A stretch of DNA of 64,000 nt from Cercozoa sp. M6MM (taxonomy: Eukaryota > Protista > Endomyxa: Ascetosporea). The translations under genes and the position numbers were made by a program. Location: NCBI GenBank assembly GCA_040357565.1, contig JBDODJ010000017.1. One strand, 5' to 3'. Position 1 is the stretch's first letter, and each line of letters begins with the position of its first letter. This document shows positions 18,034 to 44,079 of this stretch, one piece after another. The notes under the pieces were generated by a model. It made no database searches and was not told where the DNA came from. It was given only the letters and a program-made list of their open reading frames with translations.

Positions 18034-18043
18034 NNNNNNNNNN

Positions 18044-18089
<46 letters not shown>

Positions 18090-18216
18090 CCACTCCAACA
18101 GGAACAACAACCACTGCAGCAGGAACAACAACCACTCCAACAGAAACAACAACCACTCCAACAGGAACAACAACCACTCCAACAGGAACAANNNNNNNNN
18201 NCAGCAACAACAGCAA

Positions 18217-21066: not shown

Positions 21067-22079
21067 ATGTCCTCTGAATTCGCCCCCTCGTCCAATGACG
21101 TGACCGTGAAGGTGTGTTCATGCTCCGTTTGACTGAGGTTTGCTGATCACTTTTTTGATTTGTGTGCTTTTGCTTTCGAAAGGTCGGCCTGATTGGCGAG
21201 TCACAGACGGGCAAGACGTCGCTTATGGGTCCGTTGTTCTGTTGTTTCCGTTTGTTCGTAAATCCTTACTTGTCGGTGTTGCAGTCAAGTACATTGAAGG
21301 TAAGTTTGACGAGGACTACATTGTGACTCTGGGCGTCACGTTCATGGACAAGACGATCCGCATCAAGAACCTCAACATCACGTTCAGTATTTGGTGCGTT
21401 TCGCTCGCTTGCCTTTCTTTTGTCAAGTTTTTGCCATGTGGACTATTGATGTCTCTCAGGGATCTCGGTGGCCAGCAACAGTACCTCGGCATGCTGCCGC
21501 TCGTTTGCAACGATGCGCACGCACTGCTGTTCACGTTCGACCTGACGCGCAAGGCCTCGCTCACGGTACATTGTTTTATTGTGCCCTGTTATGCCTTCCC
21601 TCTTCACAGTTCTTGCTTGCGAGTGCAGGCAGTCAAGCAGTGGTACCGACAAGCACGGCCGTACAACAAGAAGGCCATCCCGCTACTGATCGGTACCAAG
21701 TTCGACCTGTTCGACCAGCTGCCCGAAGCCGAGAAGGCCGACATTACCAAGCAGGTGTGTTTGCGTTGCCTTTGTGTGGACTGCCAACTCCTTTCTGACA
21801 GGTATCCTTGGAAGTGAATGCTTTGTTTGCGTTGCTGGACAGGCGCGCAAGTTCGCCAAGGCGATGAAGGCGCCGCTGATCTTCTGCTCGGCCGCCTCGT
21901 CGATCAACATCAGCAAGATCTTCAAGATCATCCTGTCCAAGGTGTTCGACATGCGCTGCGCAGTCAAGGAACTCAAGGGTGTCGGCGTGCCTGTCATCGA
22001 GTACCGAAACGTCGGCGGCAGCTCGTCCAAGAGAAAAGACGGCGCCGAGCAGGAGCAGCAGCCGGCCGAGGCGTCGTAA
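21067..22079 (+). CDS. SPG1: Spg1/Tem1 small GTPase (septation initiation / mitotic exit network)
   Basis: KVGLIGESQTGKTSLMVKY, YIVTLGVTFMDK, WDLGGQ, MLPLVCNDA, WYRQAR, IGTKFD and AKAMKAPLIFCSA across 5 GT-AG introns. Confidence 0.92.
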
Positions 22080-28788: not shown

Positions 28789-31700
28789 TCAAAAATGCAG
28801 CTGCTGCGGCAAGAGCGTGCTGTGGGCCGTGTGATTGTGCCGCGAGGCCGAGGTGCCCGTGGCAACCGTTCCCGGAGCATCTGGCGCTGTCCGGAAGCGC
28901 TGCTTGCCGCGTGGGTCGGTCCGAGGCGTGTGTGACATGCGATTGAAGCGCTGTGTCACCGAGGCTAGCACGTGCGTCGTGTCACGCATGGCCGCCTGTG
29001 CGATCAACGAAATAATAAGAGAGCGATATGTGTTTCAAACTAAAGCAAACCTCAGTTGCACTGGCTGCCCGCCGGGGACTCCAGGACACTACAGTATATA
29101 CAGATTATATATATCTGCATGTGTATGTTATAAGATGGCTACTGTTCTGCGTGGCGTCCACAAAGTCATGCGCCGTGACGCCGGCGTGCTCGTGGTCGCC
29201 GAGGTTGAGCGTGCGATCGCCGTCGGCGTCGTTCTCCTTGTCGTCCAGAGGACGGGGTTGCGCACGTGACTGTAATTATATACAAATATATATACATATA
29301 AAGATATACATATATATAAAGATATACATATATATACAAAGATAAATATATATATATATATATCAACATATATATATAAACACATATATATATATATATT
29401 TATAGATACATGTTGACGGGGTACATTGGGACGTGCGTCAGGCCGAGGTGACGGCGGAGCCACGTGCAGCACGTGCGAGGCACGCAGCACGCGCGAGTGG
29501 TGCTGCAGCGCGTGCACCAGTCGGAGCAGACGCGGCTCGTCCAAGAGCACGAGACCAGGCACGTCGCGATTGCGCACGTGTCTCAGTAGGCGCTGCGCGG
29601 CCGGTACCGTGGCCAGTAGAACGCACTGCGCGGCACGGCACTGCCGCATGCGGCGCCACAACTGATGCGCCTCGGTGCGACCCAGCTGGCCCTGTCGCAA
29701 CTGGTACGCATGTACCACTGCCTGTACTGGCTGCGATGGCGATTCCTGCAGGTGCCACTCGACGATATGTGCACGTGCGTACTCCGACTTGGCCGAGCGA
29801 ATCGGCGTTCCTTCCATAGACTGGGGGAGGTAGGTAGTAAAAGGGAGTAAGGGGGAAGGGCTACCGTATCGAGTTGGAAACTTTCGTTGTCGGTTGGTGA
29901 GGCAGCTGCCGTTCCGTACGGTGTCGGTGATGGTGACAGGGACACTGCCTCCTGTGTGTNNNNNNNNNNNNNNNNNNNNNNNNNNNNNNNNNNNNNNNNN
30001 NNNNNNNNNNNNNNNNNNNNNNNNNNNNNNNNNNNNNNNNNNNNNNNNNNNNNNNNNNNAAAGGGAGGGATGGAAGGGGAGGGGAAATGCACCAGCAGTA
30101 TGCGCACAGCTTCGGTGAACTGCGACGGTGTAGCACGTGTCAACCGGGCCACAAACTCCCTACTCGCGGGGGGGGGGGTAGGGGGAGGGGGTAAATTAGA
30201 CCAGTAGTACCTAGCGAAACTGGACAATTCGAGTGGCTGAACCGCATCGGCCAGAGCTAGTGCCTGGGGGTACGGGAGGTAGGGAGTAAAGGGGCAAGGA
30301 TAAGAGCGAGGTACCTGTTGCACACTGGCATTGGTCGGTGTGGCTCCCAGTGTGGGTGGCGAGGTGGCCTTGTCACTGTTGTTGTTGTTATTTTCGATGT
30401 TGCTATTATCGTTGTTGTGGTTATTTTCGCTGTGGGTACTTTCGTTGTTGTTATTTTCGTTGTTGTTGGGGGTAGTGCACTCAGAGGAGGTGTCCACCTC
30501 GGGCACAGGCGGCGTGGCAGGTGCCACAGCGAGTCGCACCGTCGGCGCCACCGCTCGCAGCAGCGGCAGCAGCGTGGTGTCTCTGCCCACCAGTGTCGCC
30601 GACTGCTCGTGCGCTGCGCTGTCGAACTGACTCGTCGCACTGGAGGGGAGGGGGTAAAGAGGGTCAGGGTGGGGGCAGGAGAGTAAAGTACACGACAACA
30701 CAAGTAGCGTCGAGTTGTGCAGCCAGTGAGGCGGCACGTCGCACTTCCTCCACCGACACAGACCGACCTTGTCGCTGGATGCAGGTCACCAGGACACTCT
30801 GACCCTGCCACTTGGCCCGCACTCGCAGGGGACTCTCCTCTGGAACACCGGAGGCGAGGGTAAGGGCAAGGGGTGGGGAGGGGGTAAAGATACCATAAAC
30901 TTGAAGTTGCTCCAGTTTGGCCGCCTGCAGCAGCGCAAAAACCATGCGGCGCCACTGCGTCGCATCTGCGTCCAGCAGTCTCTGGGGGGGGGAGGGTAAA
31001 GGGGTAAAGGTGGGGAGCGGGGAGGTAGAGATACCTGCAGCAACACATGAGCCTCGGCGTCGGAGGCATCGCTGGCGGCCAGCAGGTGCTGCACAAAGTG
31101 CTGCGACAGCACCGTGTCCTCGTTGGATGACACTTGTCCCAACAGCGACTCGGTGTCTCCCGGTACCACCGAGGTAGCTGCTGCCGTAGGCGAGATGTTC
31201 TGCATCAAGAAGGCCACGGTGCGACGAGATGTGCGCACGATGGCGCGCAGTCGTGCCAGGTCGGCCTCCTGCGCCGCGATCCTGCCGCGTATCTCGTCGG
31301 CACGCCGCACTTCCTCCTGGGGCACATGGCAAATAACAAGAAGTAACGGGGTGTCAAGCACACACCTCCTGCGCACGCAGACTCTCACGCATCTGCGTCA
31401 GCAGTTCTTCATTGCTCTCCTGCCGACGCGTCAGCACGTCGTGCTGCTCTTGCGAGACACGCAGCCTGGGGTAGGGGGCAGGTCGGGGGTAAGGGCAGGG
31501 GGTAAGGGCAGGGGGTAAGGGGTAAGGGTAGGTAGGAGATAAGGAAGTAAGGTAGGGGTACGACTCGTTGGCAGCGTCGAGTTGCAGGTGGCGTTTCTGT
31601 AGCGCCTCCTCGAGAGTGCGTCGCTGCTGCTGCTCCTGCCGAAGCGAGTGCTGCATCTCCTCCAGCGCTGTCTGCGCCGCATCGGCCGCCAGTCGCGCCG

Positions 31701-32286
31701 CCGCCAGTTCCGACGACAGACGCGTCGTTCGCGCTCGCTCCTCCGATAGCAAATTGCGCGAAGTCTACTCCCAGAAGGGGTAGGGGATAGGGGGAGCTGG
31801 GGGGAGGGGGTAAGGCACCTCCAATTCGTCCTCGAGCGCCTGGCGCACCTCGCCGGTCGGAATCAACTGTCGCAGTGCTTCGTCCAAGGAAGTACGTGCT
31901 GCCAGCTGCGTCTGTAGCGTCTTATTCCGCGTGTGCAACGAAGCGTTCGCCTCCTGAAGTTGTTGTCGCTGCGCGTCCAGCAACAACACGCGCTGCTTGA
32001 GTGCCGAGGCCTCTCGCTGCGACGCCTCGCTCTTCTGCCGCTCCTTCTCACACTTGTGCTGCCACTGCGCGCACCGCTCCTGCTCTGCCTGCAAGGCACG
32101 TGTCAAAAACACCACTGCCTCGGCACGTGGTGTGTCCTGCAACACAAGCACACAAACAAACATCGCCGGCTCACACGTGCCACACACAACGACAAAACTT
32201 ATCACAAATTTTTCGAAAATGGCAGTTGGCACTGATCGGCGCACCTCATCGCGTTGCGATTCCTCCTGCTGACTCGACGCCTCCAT
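28789..32286 (-). CDS. Coiled-coil protein with two tandem degenerate Mrr-like (type IV restriction endonuclease fold) domains
   Basis: ATG at 32286, about 14 exons. N-terminal heptad-rich region; domain 1 DATQWRRMVFALLQ...SVLVTCIQRQGRSVSVEEVR...CVVATSQFDSAA; domain 2 TPSQFTEAVRILLEA...VVHAYQLRQGQLG...VLLAT...LVLLDEPRL. A 100-N gap (29960-30059) falls in an intron. Confidence 0.7.
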
Positions 32287-32868
32287 TGGCACGCCGGTAA
32301 CGCGCCCCAACCTGTGGCGAGAACTATTTGGCACCTCTTGGCAAGATTTTAAATGGTGCTGAGGTGCTTTCGTGGCTACGCTGTAGACGCAATGCGGCCA
32401 TAGAACAGTGTGTCAAAGTGTTACTACTATATTAGAGGGTTTAATTGACCGAATGCAGCGATCGCTGCGATAGAAACGATTTACTTGACAAGAGTGTTGG
32501 GATCGCACCCTAAAACTCTCGCGCTGGGCCAAGAAAAGTCGAGCAAAACACTAGCAACTTGACAGATCACAGCTTGTATATACCAGGCGAGTCACCAGTG
32601 TAGAGCACAGCGTGCCAGGACACACAGGCGGTTCGTAGGGTGATCCGTGTGACCGGGCTGGGAAGCAAAATTTCCCCCAAGGATCCTGGGCCGCTCACTA
32701 ATCACTGCATCAGGCACGAATTCGACAAGAGAGTGCTCTAGTGGTGTTTCACGTCTACTCTAACGACACATTCTGTAAGCAGACAGTTTTTTCTGTTGGG
32801 CGTGCAATGTTGTTCCTTTCTTGCTCTGATCGACCGTTTTCCTCGCCCTAACATGTTAGGCGCAACGA

Positions 32869-37998: not shown

Positions 37999-40694
37999 NN
38001 NNNNNNNNNNNNNNNNNNNNNNNNNNNNNNNNNNNNNNNNNNNNNNNNNNNNNNNNNNNNNNNNNNNNNNNNNNNNNNNNNNNNNNNNNNNNNNNNNNCC
38101 CCCCCCCTCCCGTAGACACCCAAGGCCGAAGCAGCGCTGACGTGGATCTTTGCCAAGTTCGCCAAGCGCACATGGGAGAGTCAGCTGCAGCTCGACGAGT
38201 ACGTGCAGTGGGAGAAGACGAGTCTGCGCGGACACCGCTACTCGGACGAGGCCATGCGCTTCCCGCAGTACATGTCGCGACGCGACTTTGGCGACTTTGT
38301 CATCGCCTGCGGTGCTGGCGAGCAGGCTGGTACCTGTCTCCCACTTCCACTTTGTTGACCATTCCCTACCTAATTACACGAGTCACTGCAGCCAACGAGA
38401 AACGTCTCCGCGACGTTGCGCGCAACTACGGCTCCGGTGCCGACCCCGAGCGGTATCATGTGTCTCTTCTGTGTCCCCCCCCCCCCGCACTACCTCGCAT
38501 GTGTGTGTAGTGACACAATTCCGCTGTGCGGTTTCCTGGAGTTCTACCGTCGCGCCTCGTTGGATCGACTGGGCTGCGTGTGGAACGATTTGCACGTGTA
38601 CGGCTTCCGCTGGGACTTCCGGCGGTACACTGAGCTTTCTGAGTGACCAGTGTGGCTCGGGTGTGATTTGGGAGGCATGTGTGCTTGTTGCAGTGATCTC
38701 GAGGTGCTGGCCGAGGAAGAAGCACTCGAGCAGGACTGGTCGCATGCGCCGCGCGCCATCCTCGTGTTCAGTGAGAAGCGCTACGTCGACAAGCTGTTCG
38801 AGTGGATGCGCTGCGCCGACACCAACGACAGCGCGCAGCGGTACCATACTATCCGTCCCCCCGTTTCCCATACGCCCGGCAGACCCCCCCCCCCCGTATA
38901 GGTCACTGCGTGAGCGCGTGTGGAAGCTGCTGTTGCGTCTGCCGACGGACCCGAAGCACACAGAGATGCTGCGCAAGGAGCCGGTCAAATACCTACCGGA
39001 GACGGCGCAGGACGCTCATGTGTTCGAGTACGCGCTGATCGCGGTGGAGGCGTGGCTCGATACGGACCCCGAGTTCGTGGAGCTTTTCTTTGCCAACGAC
39101 GCGCAGTGCTTCCGGCAGCTGTACGAGCTCTGGCTCGACGAGGGCACGCGCGACTGCGATGTGCATGCGCTGCGACTCATCTCGCGCGTGCTCATGCAGG
39201 CCATTCGCACGGTAGACCCCTCCCTTACCCTGTCTGTATTCCATCCTCTTGTCCCGCAGGTGCAACCGACGGCACTGCTGGCCACCAAGACAGGCACGGT
39301 GCGCGCGGCGGCCCAGCAGGCCGAGGAGGCGAGTACCAAGGCTGCCTCGAAGAACACGGGCAGCACGTCGGACACGGAGGACGAGGGCGACGTCGACTAT
39401 GACCATGCTGCTGACGACGAGAAGCAGGAGCCCGAGCAGGCGCCGGAAGAAGGCAAGCCCGAGGTGCAGCAGCAGGTGACCGAACCGCCGAAGGACGATA
39501 ATGCCATGTCACCCGAGCTGGCGCACAGCATCCTGCGCAACATTGCGCTCGAGCACGTCGTCATCTCGCTGCTGCGCACTCTGTATGTTGCCAATTTGCA
39601 ACTTGTTCTCTCATGCTCTTGCTTGGTTACATTCCCACCCACAGGTCGCAGGTGTCGGTTGAGACAGACGAAGAGGACCCGACCGTCGAACTGGCGGCTT
39701 CGCTGGCGCAGGCCTGCGTGTCCTTCGATATCAAGGTGCATCTTGTCTTCTGAACAGAAGGACAGGTAGATAAGCTATGTACAGGTGCTGCACGCGGTGC
39801 GCCGTCTGTTCAACGAGGAGCCCGAGGTGCTGTTCCGCTCGCTGCACTCATCGGTGGACACGGTGCGCGACCGCATGGGCAGCCTGATGACGCTCATTGT
39901 GACGATGCCGGCCGCGTCGATCGAAGACCGCCGCTGGGCCATCCAGAGTACGTCCCGACCACTGTGAGGTCTGTCTGTGTGCATGTGCATACTGTTGTGC
40001 AGTCCTGGTGGACTACGTTATCGAGCACGGAGCCGACAACGGCGATGGTCCCAACCAGAGTCGCATGACCGAGCACCTGTACACGCTGGGCGGCATGCTG
40101 CAGTCGGTACGCTGATTTTGTCCCCTGGGCGTATACGGACGTAGGTAGGACTGTTGTGTGGTGTCGCAGGTGGGCAGCGAGGTCTGCCAGAGCGACGACA
40201 CGTCGTGCAAGCTGCGGCAGAAGCTGCAGGCACTGACGGTGTTGCTGCTGCAGCACGTGGTCGATGTCGTTGACACTGTGCGCAAGGAACACACCTTCCT
40301 CACCTTTGCCGTGGGCGAGATGCACATGGTACAAGTCGGTGTACTCTATGTGGACACCTCTGTCTCATGACTCGTTGTAATACAGGTCGGTGCCATCCGT
40401 GCCCTGCGTGAGCTGGTGGAACAAGGCTACTGGGACTGGCAGCACTCGACGCTCAAGGTGAGCACCGTCATGGACGCACTCTTCCTCGAGTGTCTCTTCC
40501 CGAGCGAGCACGAGCCTGTGTGCCGGTAGCTTGACCCCCTCCCCATCCCTTACACTGTACACATGCATACACCTGCAGCAATGCGATGCTGCGCGAGGAG
40601 GCCTTTTTGCTGCTGGTGGCGGTGTCGTTCGTGACGCCGCGTACGCTGCTGCGTCTCGTGCGCATGCTGCGTGACCTGACGCAGGTAGGCTCTG

Positions 40695-44069: not shown

Positions 44070-44079
44070 NNNNNNNNNN

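Follow-up and report, generated by a model that had tools for sequence, protein, structure and literature searches.

What kind of protein is encoded by the intron-rich gene that lies on the minus strand, at 32286-28789, of a 64-kb window of the genome of Cercozoa sp. M6MM? The window is the whole stretch of 64,000 nucleotides (nt) taken from contig JBDODJ010000017.1 of this amphizoic marine amoeba, which was isolated from fish gills, belongs to Apofilosa (Rhizaria) and is now named Lemnamoeba sinaloensis (PMC11069148, PMC13746701). A sequence-only reading of the locus had proposed a coiled-coil stalk with two tandem, catalytically dead domains of the Mrr restriction endonuclease type. The gene is real, and its product had no annotation until now beyond “hypothetical protein”: the spliced model of 826 amino acids (aa) is letter-identical to MES1908268.1 (MHM6MM_001235), which was reached via the search with exon 12. 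The interpretation we favor, with a probability of roughly 60%, is that the gene is lineage-restricted and encodes a coiled coil of ~260 aa followed by two diverged Mrr-type PD-(D/E)xK domains, hereafter units 1 and 2, and that the product would be a non-cutting pseudo-nuclease that binds DNA or serves as a scaffold. Searches were made by single exons and then with the public protein, which is identical to the spliced model.

Resemblance of the two units to the Mrr catalytic domain

When the whole protein was scanned against Pfam, Mrr_cat (PF04471) was the top family, and residues 356-408 of unit 1 were aligned with positions 46-98 of the 115-position profile (E=6.8e-4, 20.2 bits). A hidden Markov model (HMM) of our own, constructed from 64 diverse bacterial domains of two other phyla, collected by PF04471 genome searches after relatives of E. 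coli Mrr had been found in public genomes, found both units in MES1908268.1 and scored the protein at 14.4 bits (p ~1e-6 for one sequence). That is also the score of unit 1, while the best of 2000 composition-preserving shuffles attained 4.4 bits. The unit aligns with Mrr_cat from end to end in both hmmalign and hhalign, the latter over 122 columns with P=2.6e-4. In the ESM Atlas, residues 300-440 adjoin Mrr_cat clusters by features (0.90), with all 10 of the 10 best rows falling in the same family, and the Atlas ESMFold model of the unit superposes on Mrr_cat clusters over residues 305-435 with TM values of 0.70-0.75. The AlphaFold2 (AF2) model gives the secondary-structure order α-α-β-β-β-α-β-α-β. 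Unit 1 is very probably a genuine, although very diverged, domain of the Mrr clade. The sequence-only reading had placed it correctly (exons 6-8, from 30981) and had quoted its sequence correctly except for one Val dropped at a split codon, where V392-V393-V394 had been read as two residues.

Unit 2 gives lower scores. Our HMM aligned its residues 614-680 at 6.9 bits, which none of 2000 shuffles reached (maximum 6.2 bits), and, when exon 11 was left out, the alignment extended from end to end over positions 16-142 with 9.1 bits (p 4e-5). The comparison by hhalign covers the whole unit (P=3.5e-3), and the E. coli Mrr-family profile aligns residues 613-673 (P=2e-3). In the ESM Atlas, Mrr_cat clusters were found again, with a feature score of 0.90 and TM values of 0.57-0.64. 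In the AF2 model two helices are followed by the insert encoded by exon 11 and then by the order strand-strand-helix-strand-helix-strand-helix, and exon 12 modeled alone likewise gives β-β-α-β-α-β-α. Unit 2 is probably an Mrr_cat-like domain as well, more diverged than unit 1. The proposal of two tandem Mrr-type domains is thus supported strongly for unit 1 and moderately for unit 2. Mrr-like spacing, which had been claimed for both, lies above chance in each, by Pfam for unit 1 and by our HMM for the pair, though marginally so in unit 2.

The order of the AF2 elements, modeled at low confidence, fits the restriction-endonuclease core (alpha-beta-beta-beta-alpha-beta) in both units. When the model of the whole protein was compared with the Protein Data Bank (PDB), the best rows were PD-(D/E)xK folds, namely a splicing endonuclease (E=5e-3), Hjc, MspJI, Can2, Card1, SfsA, and EcoO109I; the weak rows of the structural comparisons, those with the exon-12 model included, also contain 3ajv, 2zyz, RPB5, FAAP24, MUS81-EME1, and XPF-ERCC1, none of them significant. 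Sequence searches of the PDB yielded nothing useful, whether MES1908268.1 or the E. coli Mrr profile served as the query.

One possibility is that the likeness to Mrr arose by convergence or by chance, at least in unit 2, so that the gene would encode an orphan coiled-coil protein with lineage-specific alpha/beta domains. A number of results lean in that direction and must be counted against the interpretation given above. All the scores are sub-threshold: unit 1 lies 0.8 bit below the Pfam gathering cut-off of 21 bits, unit 2 is missing from the Pfam results of the whole-protein scan and barely exceeds the best of its shuffles in our HMM test, and exon 12 alone has no Pfam match even at E=10. 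AF2 confidence is low in both units (predicted local distance difference test, pLDDT, 40-60), no PDB structure was matched by the whole-protein model at E<=1e-3 in Foldseek, where the top rows had E>=5e-3, and many unrelated alpha/beta folds score similarly with the exon-12 model in Foldseek and VIA. The ESM support comes from a single language model, and a third of shuffled proteins also obtain 10 of 10 Atlas rows in the same family. Moreover, no homologue was found that would permit a test of conservation or selection. On the other side, several different methods converge on one family, with ~24,700 Pfam models and 7.7 million Atlas clusters to choose from, both units are collinear with Mrr_cat over the whole domain, including the characteristic C-terminal motif, and reversed and shuffled controls fail in the test with our HMM. 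We regard a chance resemblance as improbable, although it is the rival that survives best. The absence of any Mrr_cat match from the exon-by-exon Pfam scan is explained by the introns, which split both domains.

Gene model, coiled coil, and assembly gap

The exons, when joined by their coordinates, give a coding length of 2481 nt, that is, 826 aa and a stop codon, and all of the 14 introns between the 15 exons are of the GT-AG type with consistent phases, which agrees with the earlier description of an intron-rich eukaryotic gene. Nine of the 14 introns are 44-55 nt long and consist of 71-83% pyrimidine on the gene strand, as against 31-57% in the exons, and the exon and intron calls rest on this contrast in composition as well as on the reading frame. 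On the coding strand, C makes up ~50% of these short introns, whose donors are of the GTAC/GTAT/GTGC type. Since the coiled-coil exons and the domain exons are parted by short introns only, leaving no room for a second promoter, they belong to one gene; the short, host-typical, C-rich introns between all domain-coding exons mark it as a native nuclear gene with one transcript. Intron 1 (32137-32244, 108 nt) and intron 8 (30264-30314, 51 nt) have lengths that are multiples of three and contain no in-frame stop, so that their retention would be frame-neutral. The public annotation was made from a 23.7-Mb short-read assembly by funannotate with transcript reads (PMC11069148, PMC13746701).

The N-terminal part was modeled by AF2 as two long helices, residues 3-105 and 109-259, with pLDDT 75-90, and a heptad scan is concordant. 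The coiled coil that had been proposed is therefore present, but its length is about 260 aa rather than ~300 aa. NCBIfam and PADLOC gave generic coiled-coil matches only (SMC, HmpF, JetC). Residues 260-304 form a low-confidence spacer between the coiled coil and unit 1. The Asn-rich linker between the units was also found as described; AF2 models it without any secondary structure, at a pLDDT below 40. The C-terminal tail is mostly disordered in the AF2 model, with one helix at residues 750-776, and its exons 13-15 are the least certain stretch of the gene model. The three 3'-terminal introns are AT-rich instead of C-rich, and a (TA)n-type microsatellite fills one of them, intron 12 (29424-29270, 155 nt), just upstream of the tail exons.

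An assembly gap interrupts intron 10. It falls between the exon 10 donor (GT at 30092) and the exon 11 acceptor (AG ending at 29952), and both exon borders are in phase 0. On the gene strand, 33 nt of C-rich sequence typical of the introns come before the gap, and an AC-repeat that runs into the acceptor comes after it. Each of the five N gaps in the window has a simple repeat at its start or end, and simple-sequence repeats, mainly AC:GT, are reported to have broken this short-read assembly (PMC13746701). Given the AC-repeat flank, the repeats abutting every gap of the window, and the published breakage, the missing piece is most likely an intronic (AC)n tract, although the gap may hide an exon. 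No other contig of the same assembly bridges it; only self matches were returned. In order along the window, the gaps and their repeats are 18034-18043 (AAC)n, 18192-18201 (CAA/CAG)n, 29960-30059 (GT)n, 37999-38098 (CA)n, and 44070-44079 (CA)n. Exon 11, which follows the gap, has an exon-like composition (51% pyrimidine, in contrast to 78-80% in the flanking introns). Skipping it would preserve the reading frame, and its omission restores the Mrr_cat spacing of unit 2 in the alignment to our HMM, the insert alone being what breaks that spacing. We keep it as an exon; in unit 2 it would form an inserted loop that separates helix 1 from the strands.

These features bear on the possibility that the gene model is an artefact or that the gene is decaying, whether as a pseudogene, through a misjoin across the gap, through skipping of exon 11, through an exon hidden in the gap, or with another 3' end. 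The gap does sit inside unit 2, exon 11 is of low complexity and has phase 0/0, exons 13-15 are short and have atypical AT-rich introns beside them, and the protein is an orphan in our searches. Nevertheless, the frame runs open for 826 codons through 14 canonical introns whose phases agree, the identical public model was produced by a pipeline that used transcript reads (PMC11069148), exon 11 lies between two typical introns and resembles exons in composition, and the gaps of this assembly are caused by simple-sequence repeats, as their repeat flanks and the published account indicate (PMC13746701). We give this explanation a slightly smaller chance than a fortuitous resemblance.

Catalytic positions

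D203, Q219, and K221 are invariant in the E. coli Mrr family, and two Asp and the Lys are, according to the literature, essential in Mrr enzymes. The catalytic motif of Mrr_cat combines an Asp of strand 2 with the Q/E-x-K of strand 3, and it was found in neither unit (Table 1). The replacement of the FE, D, and QxK positions by WR, LR, and TCI in unit 1 and by FT and HAY in unit 2 had been noted previously and stands, except that an acid, E592, is retained on the Asp column of unit 2. The likeliest reading is that both units are catalytically dead, because the Lys is missing from Q-x-K in both. The least probable of the rivals is that nuclease activity persists in unit 2, or in the pair of units, at a non-canonical site, formed by E592 on the metal-binding Asp column and Q611-x-R613 at a two-residue shift or with H608 as the general base: the strand reads H-A-Y-Q-L-R, so that a shifted register at Q-x-K is possible, and PD-(D/E)xK active sites are known to migrate (PMC3424549), but the E. 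coli profile, our broad HMM, and hhalign all three place H-A-Y, not Q-L-R, on Q-x-K, the helix-1 Glu of unit 2 is replaced as well, Arg in place of Lys was judged likely inactive in the case of Cyanophora (bioRxiv 10.1101/2024.07.17.603841), and unit 1 is devoid of any candidate catalytic residues.

Table 1. Coordinates of the gene and its features in the 64-kb window
Feature	Position	Strand	Residues or content	Basis or remark
Whole gene	28789..32286	-		GT-AG borders, phases, letter-identity to public protein
Exons 1-5	32286-32245, 32136-31819, 31764-31562, 31465-31366, 31316-31035	-		
Exons 6-10	30981-30894, 30839-30692, 30639-30315, 30263-30211, 30159-30093	-		
Exons 11-15	29951-29865, 29820-29425, 29269-29143, 29088-29051, 28995-28789	-		
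N-terminal coiled coil	31203..32280	-	residues 3-259	exons 1-5; AF2 helices, heptad scan
Unit 1	30516..31067	-	residues ~305-435	end of exon 5 and exons 6-8
Unit 1, helix-1 F-E column	30954-30949	-	W325-R326	HMM alignment
Unit 1, PD/Asp column	30831-30823	-	P348-L349-R350 region, no acid	HMM alignment
Unit 1, Q-x-K column	30786-30778	-	T363-C364-I365	HMM alignment
Asn-rich low-complexity linker	30255..30500	-	residues 441-505, 29% Asn	
Unit 2	29446..30221	-	residues ~517-696	exons 9-12
Unit 2, helix-1 F-E column	30119-30114	-	F534-T535	HMM alignment
Assembly gap	29960..30059		100 N	within intron 10 (30092-29952); most probably an (AC)n microsatellite that was left unassembled
Exon 11	29865..29951	-	residues 543-571, Ser/Pro/Thr-rich insert of 29 aa	phase 0/0
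Unit 2, Asp column	29760-29758	-	E592	HMM alignment
Unit 2, Q-x-K column	29712-29704	-	H608-A609-Y610	E. coli profile, own HMM, hhalign
C-terminal tail	28792..29269	-	residues 704-826	exons 13-15

Relatives, possible function, and known counterparts

The protein stands alone in the searches that we made. The HMMER search with exon 12 among 1.84 billion representatives returned only MES1908268.1 and one spurious repeat protein, and the word-index search with residues 300-440 returned only the protein itself; no relative was found with MES1908268.1 in scans of metagenome or viral contigs, the paralogue search with exon 12 in the same genome gave only its own locus, and the six-frame search of that genome with PF04471 gave no match. 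Since no homologue is available, neither a tree nor a donor nor an age can be inferred, and the description of the gene as a long-domesticated bacterial defence fold is left without support. The same is true of the idea that the two units arose by duplication: on profile columns they are 18.7% identical to each other, which is no closer than they are to bacterial domains, where the identities average 17% and 14% and rise to 24%, and a direct BLAST comparison between them gave a best E value of 0.11 in a tiny search space, which is not significant.

A role as a reader of modified bases, which had also been suggested, finds no support either. The N-terminal winged-helix domain Mrr_N (PF14338) carries DNA and methyl-DNA recognition in true Mrr enzymes, and in the E. 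coli Mrr relatives PF14338 is fused to PF04471. MES1908268.1 shows no match to PF14338 at E<=10 and has the coiled coil in its place. A six-frame search of its genome found no exon for a C5 DNA methylase (PF00145) or an MT-A70 enzyme (PF05063) at E<=1e-3; in so intron-rich a draft genome this negative is weak, and the MT-A70 control also matched nowhere. Nothing points to a modification-reading role.

What the protein might do instead can be proposed tentatively. If the coiled coil forms a parallel dimer, it would present four inactive nuclease-fold domains. The dead domains might retain a surface for pairing and another that faces nucleic acid, as in ERCC1, EME1, FAAP24, Sen15/54, RecC, and the inactive restriction endonuclease (REase) modules of bacteria, and the dimerized protein could then hold nucleic acid or scaffold partners without cleavage. 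That its function is to bind or bridge DNA, or to scaffold partners, without cutting is a proposal to which we assign somewhat less than even odds. A more far-reaching version, in which the protein is the founder of an undescribed eukaryotic family whose dead Mrr-type pair on a dimeric stalk clamps or senses a particular DNA structure or foreign DNA but does not cut it, would be a long shot; if true, the sensor modules that bacterial conflict systems have in the form of inactive REases would gain a counterpart in eukaryotes. The more modest gain is that a “hypothetical protein” from a rhizarian amoeba that has hardly been studied becomes a testable object, a putative pseudo-nuclease in which a coiled coil carries two Mrr-type domains. 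Should it prove to be expressed and to bind DNA, it would represent a new architecture among the eukaryotic proteins that reuse the restriction-endonuclease fold non-catalytically, and one more Mrr-type domain persisting in a eukaryote. The weight of the finding is limited in two ways, in that eukaryotic domains of the Mrr_cat group and dead PD-(D/E)xK modules are both already known, and in that age, origin, and selection cannot be judged without detectable relatives.

As for the surroundings of the gene, its start lies 582 bp (32287-32868) from a divergently oriented neighbor. A Pfam scan of ten neighboring open reading frames found only a Ras-family exon: the frame at 21140-21814 on the plus strand matches the Ras-family GTPases (PF00071) over residues 48-85 with E=8e-12 and is presumably one exon of a small-GTPase gene. 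No family was found by Pfam in the long plus-strand open reading frames at 35.6-45.5 kb.

Among known systems, the nearest is Mrr_cat itself, with which both units share domain length, a predicted alpha/beta layout, and a collinear order of motifs, that is, a helix 1 with the aromatic residue, a three-strand block, a helix, a “hydrophobic-T-S/T-x-F” strand, and a final strand and helix. Unlike the Mrr_cat enzymes, such as the type IV, methyl-directed E. coli Mrr, the amoeba protein scores below the family cut-off, has D...QxK replaced, and is devoid of Mrr_N; unlike E. coli Mrr, it is also eukaryotic and intron-split, and carries its domains in tandem on a long coiled coil. Because the Pfam cut-off is missed by 0.8 bit and the catalytic motif is replaced, we file it as an Mrr-like pseudo-nuclease outside the curated Mrr_cat family. 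Two relatives share a clan or group with Mrr_cat: NA-iREase1 (PF22722), described as an inactive REase module, and fungal RRG7/DUF2034 (PF10356), by which the group is seen to be present in eukaryotes. MES1908268.1 gave no match to either at E<=10 in the Pfam scan.

In eukaryotes, the Mrr_cat/DUF2034 group is on record, and inactive homologues are a recognized part of the superfamily (PMC3424549). The extension at the C terminus of Cyanophora paradoxa MutS1 is, by its description, which is all that we compare, similar to the protein studied here in that it is eukaryotic and nuclear, matches Mrr_cat weakly, has lost the catalytic residues, and has no close relatives (bioRxiv 10.1101/2024.07.17.603841); it differs in that a single domain, with Arg for Lys, is attached there to a mismatch-repair protein, whereas here a coiled coil carries two, and no repair module is present. 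The statement that no eukaryotic family with this architecture has been described holds in part, since our searches brought up no further protein in which two dead Mrr-type domains follow a long coiled coil, but Mrr_cat-type domains in eukaryotes, including the degenerate one of Cyanophora MutS1, had already been described. The eukaryotic pseudo-nucleases and archaeal enzymes of the PD-(D/E)xK fold named in the next sentence belong to other clades of the superfamily, and none of them combines a coiled coil with two Mrr-type units. In a broader sense, however, the amoeba protein resembles ERCC1, EME1, FAAP24/FANCM, Sen15/Sen54, the N-domain of RPB5, and the archaeal two-repeat splicing endonucleases, which use inactive copies of the fold for pairing and for contact with nucleic acid.

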